Assembly (NCBI GenBank): GCA_977017575.1 | Contig: CDRNVI010000018.1 | Location: 186,001-250,000 of the forward strand | Length of the DNA stretch: 64,000 bases | Direction of reading: 5' to 3' | Source: Paramoeba atlantica | Lineage: Eukaryota > Protista > Discosea | Part shown: positions 1-62,293 of the stretch, piece after piece | Position numbering within the stretch: position 1 is the first letter of the stretch | Layout of the letters: each line of letters opens with the position of its first letter | Translations under genes and position numbers: made by a program | The notes under the pieces: generated by a model | What the model was told of the DNA's origin: nothing | What the model saw: the letters and a program-made list of their open reading frames with translations, nothing else | Databases searched by the model: none

Positions 1-49
1 TTTTCAATCACGTTATGTATGGATGGTAGGTGCATTGCGGGGGGGCATT
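1..49 (-). pseudogene. Distal continuation of the interrupted RT frame of YR element A (continues left of the window)
   Basis: Joining 12090-12130 to 1-49 across the 16-bp duplication gives the uninterrupted minus-strand frame RKLNRVFECPPAMHLPSIHNVIE, which resembles a DIRS-type RT N-terminal segment. Confidence 0.85.
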
Positions 50-55
50 GCGGGG

Positions 56-3000
56 GATCAAGTTTTTTGTAAGATCAAGTTTTTTGTAAGATCAAGTTTT
101 TTGTAAGATCAAGTTTTTTGTAAGATCAAGTTTTTTGTAAGATCAAGTTTTTTGTAAGATCAAGTTTTTTGTAAGATCAAGTTTTTTGTAAGATCAAGTT
201 TTTTGTAAGATCAAGTTTTTTGTAAGATCAAGTTTTTTGTAAGATCAAGTTTTTTGTAAGATCAAGTTTTTTGTAAGATCAAGTTTTTTGTAAGATCAAG
301 TTTTTTGTAAGATCAAGTTTTTTGTAAGATCAAGTTTTTTGTAAGATCAAGTTTTTTGTAAGATCAAGTTTTTTGTAAGATCAAGTTTTTTGTAAGATCA
401 AGTTTTTTGTAAGATCAAGTTTTCTGTAAGATCAAGTTTTTTGTAAGATCAAGTTTTTTGTAAGATCAAGTTTTTTGTAAGATCAAGTTTTTTGTAAGAT
501 CAAGTTTTCTGTAAGATCAAGTTTTTTGTAAGATCAAGTTTTTTGTAAGATCAAGTTTTTTGTAAGATCAAGTTTTTTGTAAGATCAAGTTTTTTGTAAG
601 ATCAAGTTTTTTGTAAGATCAAGTTTTTTGTAAGATCAAGTTTTTTGTAAGATCAAGTTTTTTGTAAGATCAAGTTTTTTGTAAGATCAAGTTTTTTGTA
701 AGATCAAGTTTTTTGTAAGATCAAGTTTTTTGTAAGATCAAGTTTTTTGTAAGATCAAGTTTTTTGTAAGATCAAGTTTTTTGTAAGATCAAGTTTTTTG
801 TAAGATCAAGTTTTTTGTAAGATCAAGTTTTTTGTAAGATCAAGTTTTTTGTAAGATCAAGTTTTTTGTAAGATCAAGTTTTTTGTAAGATCAAGTTTTT
901 TGTAAGATCAAGTTTTTTGTAAGATCAAGTTTTTTGTAAGATCAAGTTTTTTGTAAGATCAAGTTTTTTGTAAGATCAAGTTTTTTGTAAGATCAAGTTT
1001 TTTGTAAGATCAAGTTTTTTGTAAGATCAAGTTTTTTGTAAGATCAAGTTTTTTGTAAGATCAAGTTTTTTGTAAGATCAAGTTTTTTGTAAGATCAAGT
1101 TTTTTGTAAGATCAAGTTTTTTGTAAGATCAAGTTTTTTGTAAGATCAAGTTTTTTGTAAGATCAAGTTTTTTGTAAGATCAAGTTTTTTGTAAGATCAA
1201 GTTTTTTGTAAGATCAAGTTTTTTGTAAGATCAAGTTTTTTGTAAGATCAAGTTTTTTGTAAGATCAAGTTTTTTGTAAGATCAAGTTTTTTGTAAGATC
1301 AAGTTTTTTGTAAGATCAAGTTTTTTGTAAGATCAAGTTTTTTGTAAGATCAAGTTTTTTGTAAGATCAAGTTTTTTGTAAGATCAAGTTTTTTGTAAGA
1401 TCAAGTTTTTTGTAAGATCAAGTTTTTTGTAAGATCAAGTTTTTTGTAAGATCAAGTTTTTTGTAAGATCAAGTTTTTTGTAAGATCAAGTTTTTTGTAA
1501 GATCAAGTTTTTTGTAAGATCAAGTTTTTTGTAAGATCAAGTTTTTTGTAAGATCAAGTTTTTTGTAAGATCAAGTTTTTTGTAAGATCAAGTTTTTTGT
1601 AAGATCAAGTTTTTTGTAAGATCAAGTTTTTTGTAAGATCAAGTTTTTTGTAAGATCAAGTTTTTTGTAAGATCAAGTTTTTTGTAAGATCAAGTTTTTT
1701 GTAAGATCAAGTTTTTTGTAAGATCAAGTTTTTTGTAAGATCAAGTTTTTTGTAAGATCAAGTTTTTTGTAAGATCAAGTTTTTTGTAAGATCAAGTTTT
1801 TTGTAAGATCAAGTTTTTTGTAAGATCAAGTTTTTTGTAAGATCAAGTTTTTTGTAAGATCAAGTTTTTTGTAAGATCAAGTTTTTTGTAAGATCAAGTT
1901 TTTTGTAAGATCAAGTTTTTTGTAAGATCAAGTTTTTTGTAAGATCAAGTTTTTTGTAAGATCAAGTTTTTTGTAAGATCAAGTTTTTTGTAAGATCAAG
2001 TTTTTTGTAAGATCAAGTTTTTTGTAAGATCAAGTTTTTTGTAAGATCAAGTTTTTTGTAAGATCAAGTTTTTTGTAAGATCAAGTTTTTTGTAAGATCA
2101 AGTTTTTTGTAAGATCAAGTTTTTTGTAAGATCAAGTTTTTTGTAAGATCAAGTTTTTTGTAAGATCAAGTTTTTTGTAAGATCAAGTTTTTTGTAAGAT
2201 CAAGTTTTTTGTAAGATCAAGTTTTTTGTAAGATCAAGTTTTTTGTAAGATCAAGTTTTTTGTAAGATCAAGTTTTTTGTAAGATCAAGTTTTTTGTAAG
2301 ATCAAGTTTTTTGTAAGATCAAGTTTTTTGTAAGATCAAGTTTTTTGTAAGATCAAGTTTTTTGTAAGATCAAGTTTTTTGTAAGATCAAGTTTTTTGTA
2401 AGATCAAGTTTTTTGTAAGATCAAGTTTTTTGTAAGATCAAGTTTTTTGTAAGATCAAGTTTTTTGTAAGATCAAGTTTTTTGTAAGATCAAGTTTTTTG
2501 TAAGATCAAGTTTTTTGTAAGATCAAGTTTTTTGTAAGGATCAAGTTTTTTGTAAAGATCAAGTTTTTTGTAAAGATCAAGTTTTTTGTAAAGATCAAGT
2601 TTTTTGTAAAGATCAAGTTTTTTGTAAGATCAAGTTTTTTGTAAGATCAAGTTTTTTGTAAGATCAAGTTTTTTGTAAGATCAAGTTTTTTGTAAGATCA
2701 AGTTTTTTGTAAGATCAAGTTTTTTGTAAGATCAAGTTTTTTGTAAGATCAAGTTTTTTGTAAGATCAAGTTTTTTGTAGGATCAAGTTTTTTGTAAGAT
2801 CAAGCTTTTTGTAAGATCAAGTTTTTTGTAAGATCAAGTTTTTTGTAAGATCAAGTTTTTTGTAAGATCAAGTTTTTTGTAAGATCAAGTTTTTTGTAAG
2901 ATCAAGTTTTTTGTAAGATCAAGTTTTTTGTAAGATCAAGTTTTTTGTAAGATCAAGTTTTTTGTAGGATCAAGTTTTTTGTAGGATCAAGTTTTTTGTA

Positions 3001-6000
3001 AGATCAAGTTTTTTGTAAGATCAAGTTTTTTGTAAGATCAAGTTTTTTGTAAGATCAAGTTTTTTGTAAGATCAAGTTTTTTGTAAGATCAAGTTTTTTG
3101 TAAGATCAAGTTTTTTGTAAGATCAAGTTTTTTGTAAGATCAAGTTTTTTGTAAGATCAAGTTTTTTGTAAGATCAAGTTTTTTGTAAGATCAAGTTTTT
3201 TGTAAGATCAAGTTTTTTGTAAGATCAAGTTTTTTGTAAGATCAAGTTTTTTGTAGGATCAAGTTTTTTGTAAGATCAAGTTTTTTGTAAGATCAAGTTT
3301 TTTGTAAGATCAAGTTTTTTGTAAGATCAAGTTTTTTGTAAGATCAAGTTTTTTGTAAGATCAAGTTTTTTGTAAGATCAAGTTTTTTGTAAGATCAAGT
3401 TTTTTGTAAGATCAAGTTTTTTGTAAGATCAAGTTTTTTGTAAGATCAAGTTTTTTGTAAGATCAAGTTTTTTGTAAGATCAAGTTTTTTGTAAGATCAA
3501 GTTTTTTGTAAGATCAAGTTTTTTGTAAGATCAAGTTTTTTGTAAGATCAAGTTTTTTGTAAGATCAAGTTTTTTGTAAGATCAAGTTTTTTGTAAGATC
3601 AAGTTTTTTGTAAGATCAAGTTTTTTGTAAGATCAAGTTTTTTGTAAGATCAAGTTTTTTGTAAGATCAAGTTTTTTGTAAGATCAAGTTTTTTGTAAGA
3701 TCAAGTTTTTTGTAAGATCAAGTTTTTTGTAAGATCAAGTTTTTTGTAAGATCAAGTTTTTTGTAAGATCAAGTTTTTTGTAAGATCAAGTTTTTTGTAA
3801 GATCAAGTTTTTTGTAAGATCAAGTTTTTTGTAAGATCAAGTTTTTTGTAAGATCAAGTTTTTTGTAAGATCAAGTTTTTTGTAAGATCAAGTTTTTTGT
3901 AAGATCAAGTTTTTTGTAAGATCAAGTTTTTTGTAAGATCAAGTTTTTTGTAAGATCAAGTTTTTTGTAAGATCAAGTTTTTTGTAAGATCAAGTTTTTT
4001 GTAAGATCAAGTTTTTTGTAAGATCAAGTTTTTTGTAAGATCAAGTTTTTTGTAAGATCAAGTTTTTTGTAAGATCAAGTTTTTTGTAAGATCAAGTTTT
4101 TTGTAAGATCAAGTTTTTTGTAAGATCAAGTTTTTTGTAAGATCAAGTTTTTTGTAAGATCAAGTTTTTTGTAAGATCAAGTTTTTTGTAAGATCAAGTT
4201 TTTTGTAAGATCAAGTTTTTTGTAAGATCAAGTTTTTTGTAAGATCAAGTTTTTTGTAAGATCAAGTTTTTTGTAAGATCAAGTTTTTTGTAAGATCAAG
4301 TTTTTTGTAAGATCAAGTTTTTTGTAAGATCAAGTTTTTTGTAAGATCAAGTTTTTTGTAAGATCAAGTTTTTTGTAAGATCAAGTTTTTTGTAAGATCA
4401 AGTTTTTTGTAAGATCAAGTTTTTTGTAAGATCAAGTTTTTTGTAAGGATCAAGTTTTTTGTAAAGATCAAGTTTTTTGTAAGATCAAGTTTTTTGTAAG
4501 ATCAAGTTTTTTGTAAGATCAAGTTTTTTGTAAGATCAAGTTTTTTGTAAGATCAAGTTTTTTGTAAGATCAAGTTTTTTGTAAGATCAAGTTTTTTGTA
4601 AGATCAAGTTTTTTGTAAGATCAAGTTTTTTGTAAGATCAAGTTTTTTGTAAGATCAAGTTTTTTGTAAGATCAAGTTTTTTGTAAGATCAAGTTTTTTG
4701 TAAGATCAAGTTTTTTGTAAGATCAAGTTTTTTGTAAGATCAAGTTTTTTGTAAGATCAAGTTTTTTGTAAGATCAAGTTTTTTGTAAGATCAAGTTTTT
4801 TGTAAGATCAAGTTTTTTGTAAGATCAAGTTTTTTGTAAGATCAAGTTTTTTGTAAGATCAAGTTTTTTGTAAGATCAAGTTTTTTGTAAGATCAAGTTT
4901 TTTGTAAGATCAAGTTTTTTGTAAGATCAAGTTTTTTGTAAGATCAAGTTTTTTGTAAGATCAAGTTTTTTGTAAGATCAAGTTTTTTGTAAGATCAAGT
5001 TTTTTGTAAGATCAAGTTTTTTGTAAGATCAAGTTTTTTGTAAGATCAAGTTTTTTGTAAGATCAAGTTTTTTGTAAGATCAAGTTTTTTGTAAGATCAA
5101 GTTTTTTGTAAGATCAAGTTTTTTGTAAGATCAAGTTTTTTGTAAGATCAAGTTTTTTGTAAGATCAAGTTTTTTGTAAGATCAAGTTTTTTGTAAGATC
5201 AAGTTTTTTGTAAGATCAAGTTTTTTGTAAGATCAAGTTTTTTGTAAGATCAAGTTTTTTGTAAGATCAAGTTTTTTGTAAGATCAAGTTTTTTGTAAGA
5301 TCAAGTTTTTTGTAAGATCAAGTTTTTTGTAAGATCAAGTTTTTTGTAAGATCAAGTTTTTTGTAAGGATCAAGTTTTTTGTAAAGATCAAGTTTTTTGT
5401 AAAGATCAAGTTTTTTGTAAAGATCAAGTTTTTTGTAAAGATCAAGTTTTTTGTAAGATCAAGTTTTTTGTAAGATCAAGTTTTTTGTAAGATCAAGTTT
5501 TTTGTAAGATCAAGTTTTTTGTAAGGATCAAGTTTTTTGTAAAGATCAAGTTTTTTGTAAAGATCAAGTTTTTTGTAAAGATCAAGTTTTTTGTAAAGAT
5601 CAAGTTTTTTGTAAGATCAAGTTTTTTGTAAGATCAAGTTTTTTGTAAGATCAAGTTTTTTGTAAGATCAAGTTTTTTGTAAGATCAAGTTTTTTGTAAG
5701 ATCAAGTTTTTTGTAAGATCAAGTTTTTTGTAAGATCAAGTTTTTTGTAAGATCAAGTTTTTTGTAGGATCAAGTTTTTTGTAAGATCAAGCTTTTTGTA
5801 AGATCAAGTTTTTTGTAAGATCAAGTTTTTTGTAAGATCAAGTTTTTTGTAAGATCAAGTTTTTTGTAAGATCAAGTTTTTTGTAAGATCAAGTTTTTTG
5901 TAAGATCAAGTTTTTTGTAAGATCAAGTTTTTTGTAAGATCAAGTTTTTTGTAGGATCAAGTTTTTTGTAGGATCAAGTTTTTTGTAAGATCAAGTTTTT

Positions 6001-7789
6001 TGTAAGATCAAGTTTTTTGTAAGATCAAGTTTTTTGTAAGATCAAGTTTTTTGTAAGATCAAGTTTTTTGTAAGATCAAGTTTTTTGTAAGATCAAGTTT
6101 TTTGTAAGATCAAGTTTTTTGTAAGATCAAGTTTTTTGTAAGATCAAGTTTTTTGTAAGATCAAGTTTTTTGTAAGATCAAGTTTTTTGTAAGATCAAGT
6201 TTTTTGTAAGGATCAAGTTTTTTGTAAAGATCAAGTTTTTTGTAAGATCAAGTTTTTTGTAAGATCAAGTTTTTTGTAAGATCAAGTTTTTTGTAAGATC
6301 AAGTTTTTTGTAAGATCAAGTTTTTTGTAAGATCAAGTTTTTTGTAAGATCAAGTTTTTTGTAAGATCAAGTTTTTTGTAAGATCAAGTTTTTTGTAAGA
6401 TCAAGTTTTTTGTAAGATCAAGTTTTTTGTAAGATCAAGTTTTTTGTAAGATCAAGTTTTTTGTAAGATCAAGTTTTTTGTAAGATCAAGTTTTTTGTAA
6501 GATCAAGTTTTTTGTAAGATCAAGTTTTTTGTAAGATCAAGTTTTTTGTAAGATCAAGTTTTTTGTAAGATCAAGTTTTTTGTAAGATCAAGTTTTTTGT
6601 AAGATCAAGTTTTTTGTAAGATCAAGTTTTTTGTAAGATCAAGTTTTTTGTAAGATCAAGTTTTTTGTAAGATCAAGTTTTTTGTAAGATCAAGTTTTTT
6701 GTAAGATCAAGTTTTTTGTAAGATCAAGTTTTTTGTAAGATCAAGTTTTTTGTAAGATCAAGTTTTTTGTAAGATCAAGTTTTTTGTAAGATCAAGTTTT
6801 TTGTAAGATCAAGTTTTTTGTAAGATCAAGTTTTTTGTAAGATCAAGTTTTTTGTAAGATCAAGTTTTTTGTAAGATCAAGTTTTTTGTAAGATCAAGTT
6901 TTTTGTAAGATCAAGTTTTTTGTAAGATCAAGTTTTTTGTAAGATCAAGTTTTTTGTAAGATCAAGTTTTTTGTAAGATCAAGTTTTTTGTAAGATCAAG
7001 TTTTTTGTAAGATCAAGTTTTTTGTAAGATCAAGTTTTTTGTAAGATCAAGTTTTTTGTAAGATCAAGTTTTTTGTAAGATCAAGTTTTTTGTAAGATCA
7101 AGTTTTTTGTAAGATCAAGTTTTTTGTAAGATCAAGTTTTTTGTAAGATCAAGTTTTTTGTAAGATCAAGTTTTTTGTAAGATCAAGTTTTTTGTAAGAT
7201 CAAGTTTTTTGTAAGATCAAGTTTTTTGTAAGATCAAGTTTTTTGTAAGATCAAGTTTTTTGTAAGATCAAGTTTTTTGTAAGATCAAGTTTTTTGTAAG
7301 ATCAAGTTTTTTGTAAGATCAAGTTTTTTGTAAGATCAAGTTTTTTGTAAGATCAAGTTTTTTGTAAGATCAAGTTTTTTGTAAGATCAAGTTTTTTGTA
7401 AGATCAAGTTTTTTGTAAGATCAAGTTTTTTGTAAGATCAAGTTTTTTGTAAGATCAAGTTTTTTGTAAGATCAAGTTTTTTGTAAGATCAAGTTTTTTG
7501 TAAGATCAAGTTTTTTGTAAGATCAAGTTTTTTGTAAGGATCAAGTTTTTTGTAAAGATCAAGTTTTTTGTAAAGATCAAGTTTTTTGTAAAGATCAAGT
7601 TTTTTGTAAAGATCAAGTTTTTTGTAAAGATCAAGTTTTTTGTAAAGATCAAGTTTTTTGTAAAGATCAAGTTTTTTGTAAAGATCAAGTTTTTTGTAAA
7701 GATCAAGTTTTTTGTAAGATCAAGTTTTTTGTAAAGATCAAGTTTTTTGTAAAGATCAAGTTTTTTGTAAAGATCAAGTTTTTTGTAAA
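56..7789 (+). repeat. Tandem array of 17-mer GATCAAGTTTTTTGTAA (about 450 units) with 18-mer and point variants
   Basis: Directly visible. Variants include GTAAAGATC, GTAAGGATC, GTAGGATC, AAGCTT and TTTTCTGT. There are no spacers. Confidence 0.99.
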
Positions 7790-7801
7790 TTTATTTGCAA
7801 A

Positions 7802-10800
7802 ATGGCGGATGCTTCCGGTGCACGAATGCCCACTGCTATTATGAATCTTCTTGCGTGTTCCAAGCTTGATCGGGGGATTCTTTTCCGTCCTGCGAAGGGT
7901 GGAACGGAATCTGCTAAACTCCGCGCGAGGTCGTTAGGACACATTATGCGACTGCTTTGTTTAGGCGCTAAGCTTTCGGTGGTTTGGAGGTACGCGGATT
8001 CATCGAACTACAGTGTTTGGGAGGGGGTAGTAGAGAGTTGGGTGCCGAGCCGCTGGCGTGTTCGCTACGCTCAGTGTTCGCGATTTACGCTTCCGTTCCC
8101 TCCGTGTAGTCCTCACATCGTCCTCTGTGCTGCTCGGGTTTGTGCGCCTAAGCGTAGACGTCGTTTCAAAAAGCGCTCTCGCAAATACAGGGCACAGTCT
8201 GGCAAACGTGCTCTCCGTGACTTGGTGGGCCCTGGGGGCCCCGCTGTGAAGAGAATGTTGAGTGTGGGAACCTTGAACGTAACTACTCTTAAGCTGAAAG
8301 GTGAAGACGAGTTTAGCCTACGAAAGTGCGGACACCTTTGCGAAGTACTTGCCTTCATTGATCTGAAGGGAATAAATATTCTGGGCCTGCAGGAAACGCG
8401 ATTTAGATTCCCATCTTCTGAAAAGTCGGATGTCCTTCACCGCAAAGTACAATATCGGAACGCAGAGTTTCACTTGAACCTCATTCCAGCGCGCGCAAAG
8501 GATGCATACAATGGAATGGGATTCGTCAGCACTTTTCCCTTGTCTAAGGTATCTAAAATCAGTGAAAGGATTATGTCGGGTGAATTTGAGATGGAGGAAG
8601 GAGTCGCAACAGTTATTAACGTATATTCTCCTACACGCGATTCTAAGGACGTCGAGGTTACGGAGTTCTACGGAGAACTCGAACGTTGCTGCTTGAGAAT
8701 AAGGGAAAGCAACCCGCGTCGCCCATTAATTGTGCTGGGCGACTTTAATGCACCTTTGACACATATAACAAATAAGGATCTAGATCCCATTGCGGCCGCC
8801 CGTCTTAAAGGACTTTCTTGTTCTATAGACTGTAAGTCTGCGCACAGTCTTTGTCCAAGTAGTCGGAAATGGACATGCGAATTACCAAACAAAGCTTTAA
8901 GGCAGTTAGATCACATATTTATTTGTAGCAGATTTGCATCGGCAATTCAACGACACAAAGTGATCAAGGCACCCATTCCTACTACTCACTGTTGTGTTAT
9001 AGCCAGAATTAAAATTAAATGGCGAGTCAGTGATCCCAAAACGAATACGAATCAGCTCTCGTGGATTTCTCTTCGAAATAGTGAGGATAGGAAGAATTTC
9101 ATCAATAAAGTTCACGACCAATATCGAGCAACCTCGAACTCTTGTCGATCATGGGGCGCTCTCGCACAATATATGAAAAATGCTGTAAAAACTTTCAAAA
9201 AACCGACGAAACGAAATTTGAACAAAGAAGCTGTAAAGGACTCAAAAATACATGATTTGCGCGGTTTATATCACAAGAGCAGAAACAAAAAGGTGTTCAA
9301 CGCTCTCGTAAAGGAGAATAAAGCGGAAGTTGAAGAGATTATTTCTGACGAATGCTTGGAGATTGAAAAACAGCTTCGTAAAAACCATTCAAACCCATGG
9401 AGAACGATTCGAAAGATATGCGGGCAATATCGTGATACCTTTAGCACGAACGGAAGCTCACGAAATGATAAACTTAACGAAATTCGATCGTACTTCATGA
9501 AATTTAGTGGCGCTGATGATGGAGATCCAAATCTTAGCTTTGAACTGCTGCCGCCGCCGTTAGTACCAATATCCGATGCAGCATTTACAAGCGAGGAGTT
9601 AAGCACATCTTTAGAACATTTCAGAAGAGGAAAAACACCGGGAAGTGATGGAATACCAATGGAAGCCCTTCAAGCTATAGCGGTCCACCCTGATCTGAGA
9701 TCGCATCTCCTGAATATAATCAACCAGGTACACGAAACGGGAGTCACAGAGGAAGCCTGGCGCAACACTCTTCAAATACCCATCCCAAAGAAAGGAGACC
9801 TCACTAACATTGAGAATTGGCGGCCTATATGCGTAGTAAATAGCGTAGTTAAGCTCATGAATCATATGATACTCTCCCGCATTAGACCCAACATTGAAAA
9901 GTCTCTTCGGGGTAACCAGTATGGGTTTCGACCTAACCGAGCGACTTCTGGAGCTCAGATTATCATGAACGAAATAAAAACCAAAGCATTCAGAGGACAA
10001 GGCCTTTCTGTAGCTTTTATAGACTTTGCTAAAGCATTTCCTTCGGTATCGTTCGCTGCTATTAAAGCTAGTTTGCATGCATTTCGAGTAGGTCCATGTC
10101 TTTCTAAGATGATAATGTCTATATACGATGAGCTGAAAGGCACTGTACGAACTTCTATTGGAATCACAAAACCTTTCCCTATCACTACAGGAATACTTCA
10201 AGGTGATGTATTGGCGCCTTATCTGTTCGTTATGGTGTTAGATAGAATTCTCAATAAAGCACTAGATGGAAAATCAGACGGGGTTCTTCTCAGCTCTAGG
10301 GGTACAAGAAAGCGGGGTCTTCATGAAAAGCGCCTGAGTGACATTGAGTATGCGGACGATATAGCGTTATTTAGTGACACGAAGATTGGTTTGACAAATA
10401 TGATAGACAATGTAGCTGAAGAGTCACGCAAAGCTAATCTGAAACTAGCCGTCGGAGCAAACAAGACAGCCTGGTTAACTTTTGGTAAATCTCAAATGAG
10501 CAGCGAGAGCCTGAACAGCAAATTCTCGGGGATGATTCCGAAAGTTACGTCTTACAAACACTTAGGGCATCGGCAGGAAAATGATTTTACATCTACAGTT
10601 AAAGATCGATTGAAACTAGCTTGGGGATCTCTCTTTCGAATGAATGGTATTTGGTCTTCACAACTTAGCCCGGAGACTAAGCTGCGCCTCTACGATTCAA
10701 TAGTATATCCGGTGCTAAACTTTGGGACAGGTGCACTTTCTATTTCAAAATCCATGCTCCGAAGAATTGACGTTGAAGTTAATAACATGAGAAGAATAGT

Positions 10801-11881
10801 TTGCCAATGCAACAGATTAGATGAATACGGAATGAGCTACCCGAATGCTTCTCTGTATCTTGAAACTGAGCGCTTTTCTACTATACACAAGGTTCAGAGG
10901 GCCAAGCTCGTCGGGCACATGCTGAGGCACTCCAGTGATTTTCAAGAGCTTGTACAGTGGAAACAACGCCCGTATGCACGCAATTTATCTCCAAGCGAGG
11001 CTTGCTTCAAGGATCTTAACATTACACTGGAAGAGGCATTGGTATTTGCGTCAGACCGTGAACACTGGTATCGTCTGACAGAAAAATTGCGACGTGAACT
11101 TGAACCGCTCATAGAATACGAAAAAATTGGGTCAGCAAAGTGGAAAACTGCTCTTGCCAAAGCTAAAAAACAAAAAAGTCCTTCAGAATTACAGTTCGTT
11201 GAAGAATCAAATGTGCCTTTTCCAGCCTATAAAGCCATACAAATATATACCGATGGCTCTGTTCTGCCGATGAAAAATACGAAAGAGATTCGAAGTGGCA
11301 TAGGTATCGTAGTTCTAAAACCACGATGCGAACCCTCACGGATATCCATACCATTGGAATCAGACACTATTGAGCGAGTAGAGATCTTAGCTTTTCAGCA
11401 TGCCCTTCTCCAACTGCCGTCAAAACCATGCGCTTGTCTGTTTCATACAGACTCTTACTATCTAGGGGACTTCTTTCACAATCTTCGATATCGGCGGCGA
11501 ATCGTTGGTTACAAGGGGGTTTTAAATGGAGATTTGTTCTCCCAGTTAGACGGAAAATTACGGTCCTTAAAACATGATTTGTACTCAATATATATGTGCA
11601 AAGTCAAGGGTCACTCAGGAAATAAATGGAACGACGAGGCAGATGGGTTAGCACTGATTGCAGCGCGAAAAGTTCCTCGACCGCCTGAGCAGAAAAAGAG
11701 AAAAACAAGTAATGATTCCAACGCATCACAAATCGACAAATCCTTGGAAAAGCTGATAAAACATAGAACCTTGGAAAAGGGAAAGACGAAAACCAATCCA
11801 GCACCCAAGCGTGGCGCCGAGGCTAAAGTCACGCTGTGCGGGAAGATTGCGAAAACTGGTGGAAAGAGGGTGCCTTCATAG
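7802..11881 (+). CDS. Non-LTR retrotransposon polyprotein: N-terminal beta-barrel-like domain, AP endonuclease, RT, C-terminal RNase H (1359 aa, intact)
   Basis: APE motifs GLQETR, NVYSP, LGDFNA, LDHIF. RT motifs QYGFRP, FIDFAKAF, QGDVLAPYLF, YADD, YKHLG. RNase H motifs YTDGS, E-I-L-A, HTDS, KVKGHSGNKWNDEADGLA. Confidence 0.95.
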   Translation: MADASGARMPTAIMNLLACSKLDRGILFRPAKGGTESAKLRARSLGHIMRLLCLGAKLSVVWRYADSSNYSVWEGVVESWVPSRWRVRYAQCSRFTLPFPPCSPHIVLCAARVCAPKRRRRFKKRSRKYRAQSGKRALRDLVGPGGPAVKRMLSVGTLNVTTLKLKGEDEFSLRKCGHLCEVLAFIDLKGINILGLQETRFRFPSSEKSDVLHRKVQYRNAEFHLNLIPARAKDAYNGMGFVSTFPLSKVSKISERIMSGEFEMEEGVATVINVYSPTRDSKDVEVTEFYGELERCCLRIRESNPRRPLIVLGDFNAPLTHITNKDLDPIAAARLKGLSCSIDCKSAHSLCPSSRKWTCELPNKALRQLDHIFICSRFASAIQRHKVIKAPIPTTHCCVIARIKIKWRVSDPKTNTNQLSWISLRNSEDRKNFINKVHDQYRATSNSCRSWGALAQYMKNAVKTFKKPTKRNLNKEAVKDSKIHDLRGLYHKSRNKKVFNALVKENKAEVEEIISDECLEIEKQLRKNHSNPWRTIRKICGQYRDTFSTNGSSRNDKLNEIRSYFMKFSGADDGDPNLSFELLPPPLVPISDAAFTSEELSTSLEHFRRGKTPGSDGIPMEALQAIAVHPDLRSHLLNIINQVHETGVTEEAWRNTLQIPIPKKGDLTNIENWRPICVVNSVVKLMNHMILSRIRPNIEKSLRGNQYGFRPNRATSGAQIIMNEIKTKAFRGQGLSVAFIDFAKAFPSVSFAAIKASLHAFRVGPCLSKMIMSIYDELKGTVRTSIGITKPFPITTGILQGDVLAPYLFVMVLDRILNKALDGKSDGVLLSSRGTRKRGLHEKRLSDIEYADDIALFSDTKIGLTNMIDNVAEESRKANLKLAVGANKTAWLTFGKSQMSSESLNSKFSGMIPKVTSYKHLGHRQENDFTSTVKDRLKLAWGSLFRMNGIWSSQLSPETKLRLYDSIVYPVLNFGTGALSISKSMLRRIDVEVNNMRRIVCQCNRLDEYGMSYPNASLYLETERFSTIHKVQRAKLVGHMLRHSSDFQELVQWKQRPYARNLSPSEACFKDLNITLEEALVFASDREHWYRLTEKLRRELEPLIEYEKIGSAKWKTALAKAKKQKSPSELQFVEESNVPFPAYKAIQIYTDGSVLPMKNTKEIRSGIGIVVLKPRCEPSRISIPLESDTIERVEILAFQHALLQLPSKPCACLFHTDSYYLGDFFHNLRYRRRIVGYKGVLNGDLFSQLDGKLRSLKHDLYSIYMCKVKGHSGNKWNDEADGLALIAARKVPRPPEQKKRKTSNDSNASQIDKSLEKLIKHRTLEKGKTKTNPAPKRGAEAKVTLCGKIAKTGGKRVPS

Positions 11882-12089
11882 TAAGAGTTGGGCGGAAGAC
11901 GTGTTTCCACCAGCAGGTTCGGAATACCCTGAGGAAGAGTTCAGGAAGATAAAGGAAAAGTATTGTGTGAAAGTAAAATAGTAGGCACTACTAAACTCTG
12001 AACTGGAAGGCGAGGGAGTATAAGTTCGGGGGGAAAACATTTAACATTCTAACCGACATATGTCGGTCTTTTGGATTGGATTGGATTGG

Positions 12090-13528
12090 ATTGCGGGGGG
12101 GCATTCGAAAACTCGGTTGAGTTTCCTACAATCGCAGATTAGACGAAGTGTGGAGTCTTTCTTCGGAACTGTAAAGGTACGATGTACTACTATCGGTCCT
12201 TCGGTCTTCTCTACAACCCCCATGCGTAATAAGTCTGGTAAATGATGTCTCATAAATCGAGACACTGGTCGATTGCCTTTAGGTGCACGCAGCATGTGCG
12301 CGTGAAAGGCGTTGACGTTCTGTAGTAGATGTAAAAAGTCTAGGCTGCCATCGTCATTCATATTGTTCAGTATAGAATATGACAGTCTTGTGGTTGTGAT
12401 AGGAGCAATTATTCCCTGATTTTTGTACGCTCGCACGCTCGGTGGTCGGGTGAGCTTCCCGCGAGACATAGACTGATTGTTTGTGTCTTCAATTTTCTTC
12501 GTTGCAATGTTAGCAATGTCCGTTGAATTATGCACGTAGATAGGTTCGGGATTCGGTTCGCCTATAATGTTATCGCTGTCTAGCGTGATCTTACCGATGT
12601 GCAAGGGGAACCTACCTTGTAATTGACGTTTTAGTATGTAAACAGCTGATTTAGTTTTCTTGTCATGTCCTTTGGTGTTTTCTGGGTTCACAGTAATTTT
12701 GTCGCGTCCTGTAGCCCTAGGGACAAGGCCACTTCCAGTCGAGGGAGATATATCCACAATGTCTCCAGATCTTTGTGCTTGGCCAACAGCTGTATTACCG
12801 ACAGTGGAACTCCCTTTCTGAGGAGTGATACTAGAGCCCCTCTTTTTACAGAATGTGCCGACAACTCTGCTTTCACCCGCTTCAGCACGGCATTGGCTCT
12901 CAGCGTCGTTAAAGTCGTGAACTTGTCTTCTGGCTTCAGCTTGTCCAATTGGTCCATGAAGATTTTCCACTCCGTCAAGTTGCAAGTCATTGGAATAGCA
13001 GTCCCTACTCTGAAGGGATCCCCTTTGTGAGTCGGAAACGTTACTCCCAGTATTCTCCGCTCGAGATCTACCACTTGTAAATCTAATTTCCTCAGATGTT
13101 TGACATCGTCTATTCTGCTGCATGTTTTCCACGCCAAGGTCAGGCCCGCGGCTTCGCCCGGAAGCAGCCATTCGCACGCCTCCAATACTTGTTCGCGTGT
13201 AGCCGGGGGCGCCTGATGCTCCGGTATTTGAGCCCCTTGACGCTGAAGGGATCGCATGTAGGCTGTTACTGTCGACTTTTGCAATTGACCCCCAGATCGG
13301 AATATGATTTGTATCAGACTCTTTGCATACGTATGTGCGGTTTGGATGCTGATGGTACCCCGTTGAGTTTGCGGATTGATTAGTCTCATTTTCGACTCCA
13401 AGAAGCATATTATGCACCAATCTTCGCTTGCAACGTCGTTTCCGAGATTTTCCTTCCAAACTGTATACTGTTTGTACACGCTGGAAAGGTGATTCCAGGG
13501 CGAGTTGGATTTCTCTTCTAATAGACAA
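12090..13528 (-). pseudogene. RT ORF of element A, overlapping YR and cut by the insertion at 12090
   Basis: DLLRMGVVE, TFTVPKKDSTLRLICDCRKLN is an LTR/DIRS-type RT N-terminus. After FECPPA the frame runs into the (TTGGA)n tail. Confidence 0.88.
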
Positions 13529-16159: not shown

Positions 16160-16790
16160 CCCCTCTTTCACGCCCTGGGCTTTCCGTCTGCCCCGTATCA
16201 TTGCTATCATCCTTTCCATTCGCAATTTCCGTGCTGCCGTTTGTTGAACTCTCGGAAGTCGAGGAATCAGATGGCGTATCGAGCGCTAGGGGGGTCGGTG
16301 CAATGTCATGGTGTTCCGATGCTTTTTCAGAATTGAATATGGCTTCGGACATGACATTCGTCGCTGAGAGGGAAGGACGAAGTGGGGGAATACGATGCAG
16401 GGGTTAGGCGGAGGTGGCGGAGTGGCAAGAATTCAAAGTTTGAAGCACATGGTGCTCAGACGGCGAGTTCAAAACCGCTCATCGCAATATTCCTGGCGGC
16501 CTCACTCTAAAAGGCTGGGCTGATAACCGACTAGGCCCAGTACTCGGAGGACCGTCCCGGACCCTCCCCTCAGGGAACCAGCTCCCTTACCCGACCTACA
16601 CCTCTTGCGTAAGCCGTGTTGACGTACAATTCGTCGACGCAGCGTGTTGGCAACAGCACGTTGGTGCCGCCTTGGACAAGCGGAAACTGGTAGAGGACGT
16701 CGGCCTCGGAACTTCCAAATCTGTCTGTGAAGGGTCTGGCTTGCCAGTGACCATCCGGAGCAATCCGGAATGATTTGGATTTGGATTTGG
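16160..16790 (+). mobile_element. Short insertion with (GATTTG)3 tail and 12-bp TSD (truncated LINE or SINE-like)
   Basis: ACGTTTTGTTGT occurs at 16148-16159 and 16791-16802. The tail is at 16772-16789 and the 3' half is GC-rich with hairpins. Confidence 0.6.
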
Positions 16791-16873: not shown

Positions 16874-17538
16874 GGGTTGGCCTATGGTTGGCTCACAGCG
16901 AGATGCCCAATACAATACTGTGCCCCGGATGCAAAATGATACTCGAAGCGAAAAATGCGTTACCACACTTCCTGGGATGTGTGAAATGTTTCGGCTCAAA
17001 TGCTACTACACGGCACAATGCCTTAGTTCGACACATATACGATCTGTGCCTGAAAGCTGGTCTCCCGTGCGAGCGAGAGCCTCGGCAGTTCTCGACATTT
17101 CGTTGTGTGAAGTGTGCAGAAACGGTGGCTGATGGCCAAAAACTACATCATCAGAGGAAATGTGGCACACATTCGTTTCACCGCAGTGGACCTGACTTAG
17201 TTGTGTTCTGGGCGACAGGCGAAGTTTATTACGATCTCACAGTAGTCAACGAACTTGCGAAATGACACTTGGGAAAAAAATCGAGTCACCTATTACAAGA
17301 GGCTCAAAAAAAGAAAGTCGCAACATATGTGGACTCCAATTTAATTCCGCGCGAGCAATTCGTATGCCTACCGCTTTTGACAGGTGGTGCCATGAACAAG
17401 AGCACTATAAATTTCCACCATAGCCTCGCGGATGCAAACGGATTCGAACGCCGTCATATTCTTGAGGACTTCAAGTTGCTTCTTCAAGAATTGAACGGAG
17501 CTCTTCTGGCTTCGCAACTGCGAAAGACAATGCAATAA
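16874..17538 (+). pseudogene. CRE-like family 2 RLE 3' fragment with premature TGA
   Basis: CPGC..H..C..C, RHN, CEREP, RSGPDL, YYDLTV motifs. An in-frame TGA at 17263-17265 precedes continuation in the same frame. Confidence 0.88.
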
Positions 17539-27070: not shown

Positions 27071-28208
27071 GACAGCACGCAGCTTTAGAGCAGCAAAAAA
27101 AGTTTTCAGCTCAAGTCGCGACGTGCGATGCCTCAACAGTGGCCGCTGTACCGGAAGAAGAGTCTGCGGAGAAAGCAGTACACAAGGCGATAAAAACGCG
27201 TCTGTGTGAAACCAAGAAAACTGCGCAGATAATGCAGGCAACTACTCGGAAAGGAAGCTACTCGTGGCTGCACGCGACCGAACGATTTATACCGACGCGA
27301 CAATACACCCTAGCAGTGATGCCGAGGCTCGGTATCTGTCACCCGGAGCTCCCTTCATCCTTTCTCTGCCCGGGCTGCAAAACGGAAATCAACGGCGAGA
27401 CCGCTCTCACCCACGTGCCGGGATGCGTCAGGTGCACCGGAACGAATTCGACTACGAAGCACAATTGTCTGATTCGTTACATCTACGACCTTTGCATGAA
27501 GGCCGGTATCCCATGCGAGCGGGAGCCCCGTCAGTTTTCATCGTACACGTGCCTCGGGTGCTCGGAGGTAATTTCCGAAGAGCGAAAGAGGGAGCATGCA
27601 ACAGCGTGCAAAGGCAGCGCGTTGCATCGATCGGGCCCCGATTTGGTAGTATATTGGGCCACAGGGGAGATCTTTTATGACCTTACAGTCGTACACGAGC
27701 TCGCTCCTTCCATTCTCGGTACCAAGCCAGCAAAAGCACTCCAAGACGCGATCACGAGGAAACGCACCAAGTACGTGGCGACCAAAATATTAAGAGAGGA
27801 CAACTTTCGGTGCTTACCCATCCTTGCAAGCGGATCACTTCACGCCAACACAAGAGAGCTACTACACATTTTGGCCGAGAAATCGTCCATGAATCCGCAG
27901 GCGGTGGAACGAGACTTTGCGCTGCATTTGCAAGAATTGAATGGGGCAGTGTTAAACTGCCAGTTGCGTCGGTTCTTGGAGCCCCGTACAGAGGAGGATA
28001 CTTATGGCTTCTAGATTTAGCTTTAATTTCTTTAGAATGGATTTCTTACACTGGTTTTTTAATATATAGTTAGAGATGTGCGGTTGTAGTTTTCTCTCAA
28101 AGAAGCGAGAGAAGGGGGGAAGGAAAAATGAGGAGAAGGAACGAGTCGATTCCCTTTGTAAGACACCTTTTCCAGAACCTTTGCAAAAAAAAAAAAAAAA
28201 AAAAAAAA
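27071..28208 (+). mobile_element. 5'-truncated CRE-like family 2 copy (RLE; ORF ends 28014) with A-tail
   Basis: Same RLE motifs; 3' UTR followed by A-run at 28185-28208. Confidence 0.9.
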
Positions 28209-28244
28209 CTTTAACGATAAAGATACAGTTTCTGTACCTTGTTG
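28209..28244 (+). other. Retro-copied spliced-leader exon (CTTTAACGATAAAGATACAGTTTCTGTACCTTGTTG)
   Basis: Contains the kinetoplastid/diplonemid SL core CAGTTTCTGTAC and ends in TTG. It lies 36 nt before the ATG at 28281. Confidence 0.88.
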
Positions 28245-32420: not shown

Positions 32421-32682
32421 GCGCGAATGGATTGGGCATGGATTGCTTGTTTTAATTTTTACTGTTTTTCTTGTTTGTAGTATATACTTAGGGGAGACTA
32501 AATTGCTAGTTTCGAGCTGAGAAAAAAGGTACAACAAAAAAAAAGGGAGATCGAATTGCTAGTTTTGGGCTCCAAAATATGAAATTGCTAATTTGATTGC
32601 TTATTTTAAAATCATATACCCCCCCCCCAATGGACCTACTTGATTCGTCTAAAAAAAAAAAAAAAAAAAAAAAAAAAGGGGT

Positions 32683-32718
32683 CTTTAACGATAAAGATAC
32701 AGTTTCTGTACCTTGTTG
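32683..32718 (+). other. Retro-copied spliced-leader exon
   Basis: Identical 36-mer after (A)n-GGGGT, upstream of the ATG at 32765. Confidence 0.88.
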
Positions 32719-37474: not shown

Positions 37475-37511
37475 TTTGTTCCGATCAAATACCGCAAAAA
37501 AAAAAAAAAAA

Positions 37512-37547
37512 CTTTAACGATAAAGATACAGTTTCTGTACCTTGTTG
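37512..37547 (+). other. Retro-copied spliced-leader exon
   Basis: Identical 36-mer after an A-run, upstream of the ATG at 37585. Confidence 0.88.
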
Positions 37548-50550: not shown

Positions 50551-50725
50551 ATAAGTTTACGATATGAAATTTAGGAGACTTTATATTGTGCGTTGATATG
50601 TATATGGTGCCCCGAAAGGGGTCTAAACTATGTCTTCAAATTCCACCCCGAAATGGGTCTAAACTATTTATTTGTATACCAGGGACAGAATGTAATTATG
50701 AAATATATATTAGTGACATTTCCTC

Positions 50726-50761
50726 CTTTAACGATAAAGATACAGTTTCTGTACCTTGTTG
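50726..50761 (+). other. Spliced-leader exon joined at the AG acceptor of element C
   Basis: The SL is absent from A2. It is fused to TGACATTTCC, which in A2 follows TATTAG. Confidence 0.9.
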
Positions 50762-50797
50762 TGACATTTCCTCCTTTAAAACATCAAAAACGTTTTC

Positions 50798-56586: not shown

Positions 56587-57623
56587 TAGCGTATCGCTAT
56601 TCGATGGATGTAGCGGTTGGGCTGGCATTGAGGAGCTGCGGAACGGGCATTTTTTGGCGTGAGAATCTTGTTTGTTTAATTCGTAGTGCTTGTTACAATT
56701 CTTGCACCGGAAACGCCCCTCCCCATTCCACCAGGTGTCTGAAACGTTGTCTCCGTGTCTGTGGTGAACGTGATTGTAGAATGCCCTCCATTGACCTCCG
56801 TGTGGCTCGGTCTTCCATGTGCAGCCTTCAGCAGGGCATTCCCGTACCTTGTTTTGTATGTGTGACCGTTCTGTCGAGACTGGTTGAGTTGAGGCTCTTC
56901 GGGAGCTTTGATCGTGGCGTTTGCGCTTACCTTCCGGGGAGTAGGGGACTTGGCCTACCGCTGTATCTGTGGCTGCCCCATCGCTGCTATCGCTTGCCGA
57001 ATCGTGTTTCGCTTGAAAGTGGGAGGATTTCTTGGGACTCTTCTTCTTTTTCCGACCTTTATTATGTCCGGACACAGAGAAGCTAAGCTCTCGAGGCGTA
57101 AGATCAGGAAAAAACATCTTTTCGGTTTCACAATTGTACGCGTTACGGTTGGACGTCCGAACGTGGCGCTCGAACTTCTCTTTCACAGCCTTGTTTGTGG
57201 ATTTTTGTTGGCTGGGTGAGAGAGAATCCGCTCCGGAAAATTGAAATTCGGAATGCTCGGATGGTTGCACCCTACAGAAAAGTTCTTCTTCGGTACATGT
57301 CTGGTGGTGCCCAGTGTCAGGTGTTTCGCCTTCTATGGAGCTTTCGATGATCATCGAGATTTCGTCGGCCTGTCGCAAAGATTCGGGTGAAGGGTCCGTT
57401 GGAAGTGGCGTCGTGTATAAGTTCTCGTCATAGGTGCTGGCGCCTTCAATGAGGTCTTTGTTCGCAGCGAATTGATCCCAGGAGCCGAGCTTGTGTGCCT
57501 CCGCCTCGCAATCGAAGTTTGAGTCTTTCTTTTCCTTAGAACGTGTCAGTACCATGAAAAGAAAGAATGGCTTAGGGTAAAGAAAAGGAAACAACAAGGT
57601 ACAGAAACTGTATCTTTATCGTT
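56587..57623 (-). mobile_element. 5' part of a family 1 copy: SL (57592-57623), ATG 57555, LsmAD-like domain, two zinc fingers; 3'-truncated
   Basis: GSWDQFAANKDLIEGASTYDENLYTTPLP..RQADEISMIIE; CPAEGC..HVHHRH; CKNC..H..C. Confidence 0.9.
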
Positions 57624-57631
57624 TTTTTTTT

Positions 57632-61294: not shown

Positions 61295-62293
61295 GAATAC
61301 GAGAATGGACACGCATTGATTACGGTTGACTTCAGCAATGCGTATAACACTCCACGTCGTGACGCTATAACCCAGGCACTACTAGATAATCCCGTGTTTA
61401 AACCTTTCATGCGCATGTTTTATCTGGAATACGGCCTGCCATCTGAACTATTGTTTTTCGCCCACAATGCCCTTTTTGCAACCATAGAAAGCTCTTCAGG
61501 AATTCGCCAGGGATCATCCCTATCCTCCATGTACTTCTGTGCACTCTTACAAGGTCCTCTTCGAGAAGTCCTAAGCCTATACCCTGACGTCAAAATAAGA
61601 GCCTACCAAGACGACGTGACTCTCAGTTCCACCAACGTGCGATCACTCGAAGCGGCGTTCCTGCACTTACGCGAAACCACAGCCGAGCTCAATCTATGCG
61701 TTAACTTTCAAAAATGTGAATTCTTTCAGAAATGTGCGTCATGCGAACCCTTTTCATTAGAAAACTTAGGCGTTAATCTTTGCACCGAGTCGATAAAGAT
61801 CCTAGGAGCCTATATCGGCAAAGACAATGTGGTAGAAGATCTTCTCCTGCGCAAATTGAACAAGCACAAATGCCTATTTCGTCGCCTTCTTCTCATGGGC
61901 CCGAGTAACCTCTCTCTGGCGATTTTGCGCCGCTGTACAATTCCACGCCAAGACTACCATTTAAGAGTTCACCGCCCGGAGGCTACTCTTTACCTAGCCC
62001 AATCTTTCGAGCAGCACATACACGAGGTCCTGCAGAAATGGTGTGGCGCCGATGTCCAGGCACTCAAGCTTGCAGCGCTCCCGCAAAAACTAGGCGGATT
62101 AGGCTTGATTTCTTGCACTCTGAAACAACAATATTACTTCGCAGCTGCCCGAGAATCTATTGAAGAGCAATTTGAACCCAATAACGCTCCGGTAGATTCA
62201 GAGGGCAGCGGCAAGGTCAAAGCTAAAGCTCAGAGCCGCGCGGAAAAGGCCCGCAAATTTCTTAAAAAGAACCTGAGCCAAGCGCATGACAAG
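61295..62293 (+). pseudogene. CRE-like family 2 RT fragment (not in the ORF track because the frame runs off the window)
   Basis: Manual translation gives VDFSNAYN, GIRQGSSLS, AYQDD, KILGAYIG, LPQKLGGLG. Confidence 0.85.

Follow-up and report, generated by a model that had tools for sequence, protein, structure and literature searches.

A 17-mer leader array within the target-site duplication of a LINE, and related arrays across a LINE clade of a kinetoplastid-type genome

Introduction

Each jump costs a LINE its 5' end. A LINE preceded by kilobases of short tandem units, all enclosed in one target-site duplication (TSD), raises two questions: does the array belong to the element, and how did it reach its length? 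We examined such a locus in a 64,000-nt stretch of DNA, hereafter the window, from the Paramoeba atlantica assembly GCA_977017575.1 (contig CDRNVI010000018.1). The spliced leader of the host is of kinetoplastid type, and the host is probably a Perkinsela-like endosymbiont of Paramoeba. Comparisons were made with ENA ERZ24900291, an independent, long-read-style assembly from the same or a very close organism. A literature search for such LINE leader arrays in kinetoplastids found no description.

Results

Insertion boundaries and empty site

The 16-bp TSD ATTGCGGGGGGGCATT is present as exact copies at 34-49 and 12090-12105, its only two occurrences in 64 kb (chance expectation 0.05). It encloses, in order, GCGGGG, a 453-unit 17-mer array, an intact APE-RT-RNase H ORF and a TTTTGG(ATTGG)3 tail, as listed here with the flanking target element:

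1..33, minus strand: interrupted DIRS-type RT ORF (target element), downstream part
34..49, plus strand: TSD ATTGCGGGGGGGCATT, left copy; exact match to 12090-12105; present once in the uninterrupted DIRS copy L011
50..55, plus strand: extra GCGGGG at the 5' junction, a partial target re-copy; TRF, GCATTGCGGGGGG x1.9; missing from the empty site
56..7788, plus strand: 5' leader array, 453 units of GATCAAGTTTTTTGTAA; TRF, 99% matches; ATG-free
7789..7801, plus strand: short unique leader ATTTATTTGCAAA, from the last unit to the ATG
7802..11881, plus strand: intact LINE ORF, 1359 aa, with APE, RT and RNase H domains
8342..8935 (aa 181-378), plus strand: APE domain (Exo_endo_phos), E=7.7e-8
9782..10567 (aa 661-922), plus strand: RT domain (RVT_1), E=7.8e-27
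11231..11656 (aa 1144-1285), plus strand: RNase H domain (RNase_H), E=1.3e-14
11882..12052, plus strand: 3' UTR
12053..12066, plus strand: 3' stem-loop CCGACATATGTCGG, directly before the tail; stem conserved and loop variable in related families
12067..12089, plus strand: tail, TCTTTTGG(ATTGG)3
12090..12105, plus strand: TSD, right copy; exact match to 34-49
12106..13528, minus strand: interrupted DIRS-type RT ORF (target element), upstream part; 99% identical to P0080, an intact 745-aa protein

Deleting 50-12105 restores an open minus-strand frame of 490 codons, reading ...FECPPAMHLPSIHNVIE, and the restored DNA matches an uninterrupted DIRS copy of the other assembly (L011:6767-7115) at 100% over 349 nt without a gap, with the 16-mer present once. 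L011 was rejected as an orthologous allele, its flanks being different and its identity 99.3% over 2.6 kb; it is a paralogous empty site. Because of the TSD and the empty site, the insert can be defined as GCGGGG, array, LINE and tail. These boundaries support a single TPRT-type insertion in which the array belongs to the LINE, and the window element is best explained as a single recent insertion of a full-length APE-RT-RNase H LINE. The initial annotation had described the 16-mer on both sides of the block, an RT frame that reopens when the block is removed, and GCGGGG at 50-55 as a re-copy of target sequence. All three descriptions held, GCGGGG being missing from the empty site; in place of the empty YR-element alleles that it proposed to look for, a paralogous empty copy was found.

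Class of the LINE

Endonuclease and RT share one ORF, as in APE-type LINEs, and an RNase H domain is added; the LINE had been called intact beforehand, and all three domains were detected in the 1359 aa of its ORF. TSD length varies (16 bp in the window; 11, 11, 12 and 14 bp in other copies) and the empty site is clean. A 5'-truncated copy with the common 3' end is represented by a 103-nt 3' piece, L001:6180-6282, which has its own 11-bp TSD and is 98% identical to window 11987-12089. The poly(A) tail of ingi/L1Tc elements is replaced by TTTTGG(ATTGG)2-3 after the stem-loop; the (TTGGA)4 tail of the initial annotation is the window's TTTTGG(ATTGG)3 read into the first TSD bases.

Self-comparison of the window found no second copy of the LINE, and an exact protein look-up of its ORF returned no record. 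The nearest full-length relatives are 48-53% identical to this ORF, and its top named database matches are distant jockey-like proteins only. An Rfam search over the whole window gave no hit at gathering score; around the array-ORF junction there was none at E<=1 either, so no known ribozyme lies there.

Arrays across the LINE clade

In ERZ24900291, homologous 17-19-nt units lie directly 5' of every examined MA[DEN]ASG-type ORF start (11 intact ones and two decayed ones, L007 and L004:3193). The 13 starts carry about 1, 1, 1, 2, 2, 5, 6, 21, 26, 33, 59, 87 and 115 units, and the range is 1-453 with the window copy included. The array-bearing families share just 30-65% amino-acid identity at the N-terminus, and their unit sequences diverge in step with the ORFs.

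As in a monomer-type 5' UTR, the units lie at the 5' end of the element and inside its TSD, both in the window and at L008, where a 33-unit array sits within its own 12-bp TSD. Unit number also differs among close relatives: three copies, two of them with 1 unit and one with 33, share 98.7-99.6% identity, the single-unit L005c being 99.6% identical to the 33-unit L008a. TSDs of 11 and 14 bp flank related single-unit copies. No TSD was found for L005b, L004 and L003, whose flanks are diverged, rearranged or cut by a contig end. Arrays of young copies are 98-100% pure, and L008 has 33 pure units. The L007 array has a 30-unit higher-order repeat: a 540-bp block and its neighbour are 99.6% identical, while unit-to-unit identity is about 87%. 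Its reading as a 'frozen' array, and with it an argument for growth at insertion, was dropped in view of the near-identical higher-order copies. No variant polarity was found in four other arrays, which are too pure for it.

On comparative sequence grounds, we conclude that the array is a native 5' module of the element and a trait common to this LINE clade. A kilobase array with a unit integral to a mobile element is the mark of a transposon-derived satellite, and the window array has this form. The empty site, the L008 array within its TSD and the arrays 5' of every examined related ORF start support the view that the clade carries satellite-like DNA. Membership of the array in the inserted LINE, and the role of the LINE as a satellite carrier, had both been proposed in the initial annotation and are borne out by these data. 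It had also proposed to test whether such arrays always lie 5' of this LINE and inside TSDs: units lie 5' of every examined related start, and arrays lie within a TSD in the window and at L008. The unrelated RT ORF L005:16438 has a 14-unit array.

Array 5' ends

In 8 of 10 arrays, the 5' end lies within 1 nt of the GA start of the unit (P about 2e-5; 3.5e-4 once corrected for post hoc choice of phase), whereas the L003 and L007 arrays start at a different unit phase. Two of the in-phase junctions bear extra non-element bases and are therefore real cDNA ends. None of the examined 5' ends had carried-along flanking DNA. The common phase implies a defined RNA 5' end, and by analogy a putative start-site or promoter function may be assigned to the units.

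Structure of the window array

The array stops 12-13 nt short of the ATG, the exact figure being set by the reading of the last unit as a 17-mer or an 18-mer; the 12 nt given before agrees with this. ATG is absent from the 7752 nt of the window leader and from six other young arrays. The ORF-proximal block consists of 18-mer variants, and 18-mer blocks of this proximal type reappear within the array; the distal 145 units are almost pure. All variants in the array are recurrent, with no singleton, and multi-unit blocks of 9, about 40 and about 118-166 units are repeated: the 9-unit block is present twice, and a roughly 40-unit pattern is found at units 145 and 320. The length of 453 units is that of one assembly.

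The recurring blocks and the lack of singletons speak against a simple telomerase-like process that copies a single short template. The initial annotation had offered two routes of growth, reiterative copying of a short 5'-terminal template by the RT and later expansion of a shorter repeat that arrived with the element; the first, in its simple telomerase-like form, fits these repeated blocks and the lack of singletons poorly. The window array lacks the uniformity of a product copied from a single short terminal template, although the 33 pure units of L008 would fit such copying.

Similarity to the spliced leader

The unit resembles nt 11-30 of the host spliced leader, its boundaries corresponding to the contiguous leader nt 14-30, and the last unit plus ATTTATTTGCAAA is similar to the 3' portion of the leader. 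The similarity is modest (p=0.008-0.035 in three related families; not significant in other families), and hints that the unit derives from a captured spliced-leader fragment turned into a retroelement 5' module. The host trans-splices retroelement RNAs, as judged from five leader relics that head CRE-like elements in the window. The spread of the trait over the clade with 1 to 453 units, the common phase of array 5' ends, and a trans-splicing kinetoplastid host with a leader like the unit all go beyond the initial annotation.

Discussion

We consider it probable that the leader is a start-site-per-unit array, transmitted by RNA and grown by block duplication, in a LINE of a kinetoplastid-type genome. 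It is a variable-number array of 17-19-nt, T-rich, ATG-free, spliced-leader-like units that would pass to new copies via the element RNA. This RNA would start at a fixed point of the unit, most likely since each unit holds a start site (compare the monomers of mouse L1), and a daughter copy could therefore inherit anything from one unit to the complete array of its parent. Array length would be regained and increased through duplication of unit blocks. The main route would be DNA-level unequal exchange or replication slippage, in the window copy or its ancestors, with RT realignment on the repeated template as a possible contributor. We infer this process behind the expansion; the block pattern can be reconciled with DNA-level expansion and with RT realignment, as the RT may jump back along repeated RNA. 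Several points count against our proposal: a single-unit copy is not expandable by slippage, an RNA template of 12 kb would be unusual in its length, the Rfam search gave no ribozyme or other known RNA family at the 5' end, the L003 and L007 arrays start at another unit phase, and the array length comes from one assembly.

Alternatively, the RT itself may build the array, starting from an RNA with one or a few units on which the cDNA end realigns repeatedly in a telomerase-like manner, with hundreds of units added per insertion. The difference of 1 versus 33 units between near-identical copies and the purity of young arrays and of the distal 145 window units are in keeping with this route. So is the in-phase end of 8 of 10 arrays, expected if synthesis stops at the RNA 5' end. 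A piece of target was re-copied at the 5' junction, so the polymerase slipped there, and the element's own RNase H could release the cDNA end. However, the multi-unit blocks and the internal 18-mer blocks are not expected from a short terminal template, and the blocks mean that the RT would need jumps of up to 2-3 kb. A one-unit leader moreover offers no terminal redundancy for realignment, and higher-order repeats like the one in L007 are what DNA-level satellite turnover ordinarily leaves. We regard synthesis by the RT as possible but rather unlikely. We give a similarly low probability to the wider idea that the RT of this clade is an array maker seeded by a captured spliced-leader piece, that is, to repeat addition in an ordinary APE-type LINE.

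It is less likely still that the LINE acted only as a faithful carrier, its parent already having at least 453 units with the same variants, and a roughly 12-kb RNA being copied fully with no expansion since. The perfect TSD, the intact ORF and the lack of singletons in 7.7 kb indicate a very young copy, and its 5' end is in phase, as this account would have it; but it merely shifts the question of growth to the parent, and complete copying of 12 kb is exceptional for a LINE.

It seems very improbable that a real array was given a false length or block pattern by the assembly. Near-perfect 17-nt repeats are difficult to assemble, and circular contigs of the other assembly contain tandem duplications (10.7 and 12.5 kb) that look artificial; nevertheless, arrays of 0.4-2 kb are also present in that independent, long-read-style assembly. 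Spliced-leader recycling, in which each round of retroposition and trans-splicing at an AG in the relic leader adds a truncated leader, has in its favour a host that trans-splices retroelement RNAs and a leader-like unit, and is nonetheless highly improbable. No full leader heads an array, the units lack the last 8 nt of the leader and do not run from an internal AG to its 3' end, their edges are contiguous leader positions rather than a splice junction, and 453 rounds would be required. Finally, LINEs are known in general to land beside foreign satellites or to carry them along, but a pre-existing array or a 5' transduction from the source locus can practically be dismissed here, given an array-free empty site and family-specific, homologous units that diverge with the ORFs before every examined related start.

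In this clade, LINEs seed kilobase satellite arrays throughout a compact kinetoplastid-type genome. If the RT made the arrays after all, the element would be a true satellite generator and LINE synthesis would be linked to telomerase-type synthesis. Telomerase and telomere-specific retroelements likewise tie an RT to short-repeat arrays, and there terminal redundancy offsets end erosion; the arrays described here are interstitial, and their block structure differs from the product of a single short template. Dinoflagellate retrogenes, in a trans-splicing host, bear tandem spliced-leader relics at the 5' end. They share leader-like 5' tandem units with our LINEs, whereas the unit boundaries and the missing full 5' leader do not fit.

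Like the window LINE, the ingi/L1Tc LINEs belong to a kinetoplastid lineage and combine APE, RT and RNase H, and Perkinsela LINEs are reported as ingi/L1Tc-like (PMC5601477). The short 5' module Pr77 of ingi/L1Tc is thought to define the start of an unspliced transcript (PMC8190864). Pr77, however, is one 77-nt copy, whereas the module of the present clade is a repeated 17-19-mer, and ingi/L1Tc ends in poly(A) rather than in (ATTGG)n after a stem-loop. Short arrays internal to retrotransposons, described for the most part from UTRs of LTR elements in plants, can grow to kilobases and be scattered by transposition (PMC7004042). Expansion and scattering are the same here, but the array is a LINE 5' end and lies inside the TSD.

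A close parallel is mouse L1 (L1Md), in which tandem units also form the extreme 5' end of the element, within the TSD, their number varies from copy to copy, and copies share a common 5' end point in the unit (PMC6454616, PMC9022269). In mouse, monomer number is variable, the common truncation point is the start site, and monomers have an additive promoter effect; the duplication mechanism by which 5' units are regained is unknown (PMC6454616). The units differ in size (17-19 nt here, about 200 bp in L1) and in number (up to at least 453 here, a handful to tens in L1), and the host here, a kinetoplastid, transcribes polycistronically and trans-splices its RNAs; a promoter role of the units is putative in this case. 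The clade is an extreme and simple case of 5'-unit regain: units are very short, their number runs from 1 to at least 453, junctions are sharp, and the copies are very young. Unit counts can be compared directly between RNA, new insertions and fixed loci.

Insertion anatomy and the empty site

The window contains exactly two copies of the 16-mer ATTGCGGGGGGGCATT (0.05 expected by chance), one on either side of the array, the LINE and its tail, as the initial annotation had claimed.

Features of the insertion in the window
34-49: left copy of the target-site duplication (TSD), ATTGCGGGGGGGCATT, exact repeat of 12090-12105
50-55: extra GCGGGG between the left TSD and the array
56-7788: array, 453 units of GATCAAGTTTTTTGTAA, 99% matches
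7789-7801: unique leader, 13 nt, between array and ORF
7802-11881: intact ORF, 1359 aa, with endonuclease, RT and RNase H domains
After the ORF: 3' UTR, ending with the palindromic stem-loop CCGACATATGTCGG
After the stem-loop: tail TCTTTTGG(ATTGG)3
12090-12105: right TSD copy, ATTGCGGGGGGGCATT

Removing 50-12105 reopens the interrupted RT frame, as had also been proposed, giving 490 codons on the minus strand across the RT motif region (...PKKDSTLRLICDCRKLNRVFECPPAMHLPSIHNVIE). Upstream of the break, the encoded protein shares 99% identity with P0080, an intact 745-aa DIRS-type RT protein from ENA assembly ERZ24900291, and the restored DNA matches the P0080 copy (L011:6767-7115) at 100% identity over 349 nt without gaps, where the 16-mer occurs once. 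We rejected L011 as the same locus; it is a paralogous copy. The restored frame and this uninterrupted copy thus define the insert as exactly GCGGGG, array, LINE and tail, which entered together in a single event that left a 16-bp TSD.

The initial ATTG of the TSD is equally readable as tail, which would allow 4 nt of pairing between target and RNA tail. Both array-bearing LINE insertions with clean TSDs landed in G-runs. A conserved CCGAC...GTCGG stem with a variable loop lies just 5' of the pentamer tail in the window (12053-12066), at L006:14296-14314 and L005:14306-14324, and in weaker form at L003:12559-12576; the tail downstream of it is (ATTGG)n or (ATAGG)n. The stem is likely a signal recognised by the RT of a stringent-type LINE.

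Arrays across the LINE clade

Ten loci of ERZ24900291 were surveyed for all ORF starts homologous to the N-terminus of this LINE (MA[DEN]ASG...). Homologous T-rich units lie directly 5' of each mapped start.

Arrays 5' of homologous ORF starts
L008:9219-9813: 33 units, 100% pure
L005:8925-9986: 59 units
L004:7432-8983: 87 units
L003:778-1255: 26 units
L009:9605-9987: 21 units
L010:9898-9986: 5 units
L007:3940-6006: 115 units, 87% matches, ORF start decayed
L004:3080-3192: 6 units, ORF start decayed
L001:4508: 2 units
L006:8299: 2 units
L006:9444: about 1 unit
L005:6810, minus strand: about 1 unit
L001:9110: about 1 unit

Mapping the copies, as the initial annotation had suggested, therefore placed related arrays beside every mapped ORF start and yielded a second array inside a TSD, the 33 units of L008 being enclosed by the 12-bp duplication ATCACGTGCGGG. 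Two single-unit copies of the L008 subfamily have TSDs of 11 and 14 bp; the 33-unit copy and one of these two share 99.6% identity. The unit sequence is family-specific and diverges in step with the ORFs (the window and L004 arrays, for example, are 71% alike), so the arrays, on this comparison of sequences, are an old, inherited part of these LINEs and not captured flanks. An unrelated RT-encoding element (ORF from L005:16438, MRFLEIF...) carries a 17-mer x14 array, GAGAACCTTTCTTTTTA, at L005:16199-16437 abutting its ATG; short-unit leader arrays thus extend beyond one LINE family. Only L008:1979-2043 is a similar short array without a recognisable downstream ORF.

Other repeats were seen in these contigs. 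Short 12-13-mer arrays of CCCCCCCC(C)TGGA occur at L001:7849-7891, L002:7840-7897 and L004:6040-6101, and in a flank at L008:17935-17950. A distinct family of arrays with 19-20-nt units (TGCAATATTCCTATACTTA and ATGCATATAGCACATTGATA) occupies L002:6277-6825, L009:6339-6441, 8528-8566, 16433-16604 and 17217-17253, and L006:6209-6274. A 96-bp satellite (L007:7699-10597, about 30 copies, with 191-235-bp higher-order forms), annotated as an 840-aa "gene", directly follows a decayed LINE fragment. The 33-unit L008 LINE is interrupted by a 3.8-kb insertion (L008:10502-14298) headed by a partial spliced-leader relic. In circular-flagged contigs, whole multi-element blocks are duplicated exactly and in tandem (period 10.7 kb in L001, 12.5 kb in L006); these duplications could be real large tandem repeats or artefacts of assembly.

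The 5' end of the element

Eight of ten arrays have their first element base no more than 1 nt from the GA that starts the unit (binomial P about 2e-5; 3.5e-4 once the post hoc choice of phase is allowed for), and both single-unit copies join the target at the identical point, through 3-5 nt of microhomology. Non-element bases separate TSD and array in the window (GCGGGG) and in L008 (ATT), so the phase there marks a true cDNA end. Upstream flank and spliced leader are both missing from the 5' end of every array. This common phase and the bare 5' ends argue against random truncation within long arrays and point to a LINE RNA that would start at a unit boundary; in mouse L1, a common monomer truncation point has been equated with the start site (PMC6454616). 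There is no ATG in the 7752-nt window leader or in six other young arrays, and the array-ORF junction matched no known ribozyme or RNA family.

Internal structure of the window array

Unit types
A: 17-mer, 409
B: 18-mer, AAA end, 26
D: 18-mer, AAG end, 6
C: ...TAG, 7
E: point variant, 2
F: point variant, 2
Unit 453: last, continuous with the unique leader

None of the 453 units, as assembled, is a singleton variant. The 15 ORF-proximal units are mostly 18-mers, a form shared with the older relative L007, and the ancestral unit was probably 18 nt long. The motif D-B(n)-A(m) occurs six times; a roughly 40-unit pattern recurs at units 145 and 320 within larger related blocks of ~166 and ~118 units, with a duplicated 9-unit block beside it, and the 145 distal units are nearly pure. 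The L007 array shows higher-order structure, a 30-unit repeat whose copies share 99.6% identity, versus about 87% between adjacent units. Together these blocks indicate growth by duplication of many units at once. Such duplication is usual satellite behaviour under unequal exchange or replication slippage, and could also arise from an RT back-jump along repeated RNA. Of the two origins first envisaged, simple copying of one short terminal template does not fit the block structure; later expansion and RT jumping are both compatible with it.

Host and spliced-leader resemblance

The host is most likely a Perkinsela-like kinetoplastid, given four observations: repeats common to the window and ERZ24900291 contigs at 97-100% identity; a 38-nt relic of a kinetoplastid-type spliced leader, AACTTTAACGATAAAGATACAGTTTCTGTACCTTGTTG, which in both heads other retroelements of the poly(A) type; an ERZ24900291 contig with an EF-1alpha gene whose product has an identical counterpart in the Paramoeba atlantica transcriptome; and the features reported for Perkinsela, the endosymbiont of Paramoeba, namely a 38-nt leader, 47% G+C, ingi/L1Tc-like LINEs, LINE transcripts bearing the leader, and leader fragments in the hundreds close to retrotransposons (PMC5601477 and supplement).

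In the window, 38-nt relics head CRE-like poly(A)-type retroelements at 28207-28244, 32681-32718, 37510-37547, 50724-50761 and 57592-57629 (minus strand), often directly after the preceding element's poly(A) run; a partial relic lies at 62289-62308. Relics in this position show that trans-spliced RNAs undergo retrotransposition in this genome. At 50724-50779 the relic sits between 18-bp direct repeats, TGACATTTCCTCCTTTAA, whose end overlaps the leader start; either a TSD with microhomology or a template switch could explain this.

A unit plus the end of the preceding one aligns with leader nt 11-30 (TAAAGATACAGTTTCTGTA vs TAAAGATCAAGTTTTTTGTA). Against shuffled leaders, the likeness has p = 0.008-0.035 in three families, and six of nine (window, L007, L008a, L004, L003, L001a) share the register, leader nt 10-30. 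In several families the last unit plus unique leader resembles the leader 3' end up to ...TTG, and duplicating leader nt 14-30 (17 nt) in tandem would yield almost exactly the observed unit. This resemblance is suggestive of an ancestral trans-spliced LINE RNA whose 5' end became a fixed leader relic, part of which would later have been reiterated. Leader recycling of the dinoflagellate type mismatches the unit boundaries.

Origin of the arrays and comparison with known systems

We propose that the array is the 5' leader of the element; it would probably act as a reiterated start-site or promoter module. RNA starting at a unit boundary would leave daughters with anything from one unit to the parent's count, and array length would be regained and enlarged by block duplications. 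If units add to transcription, as monomers do in mouse L1 (PMC6454616), longer-array copies would leave more daughters, which would explain the run to very long arrays. Synthesis of the arrays by the RT itself would account for their purity and for the contrast between 1 and 33 units; we consider it unlikely, as the window array would require kilobase-scale back-jumps and a single unit would offer no start. The empty site, the clade-wide linkage of unit and ORF, the unit anatomy and the arrays without leader contradict three other origins: a pre-existing satellite at the site, 5' transduction and recycling of the leader.

That transposon-borne tandem repeats seed satellites is a known general theme (PMC7004042), and the Perkinsela paper (PMC5601477) makes no mention of LINE leader arrays. 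The closest known system to the leader array as proposed here is the monomeric 5' UTR of mouse L1. What is new is the very short unit and its 1-453 copy range, the presence of such arrays throughout the clade in a kinetoplastid-type genome, the unit phase common to array 5' ends, and the resemblance of the unit to the spliced leader.
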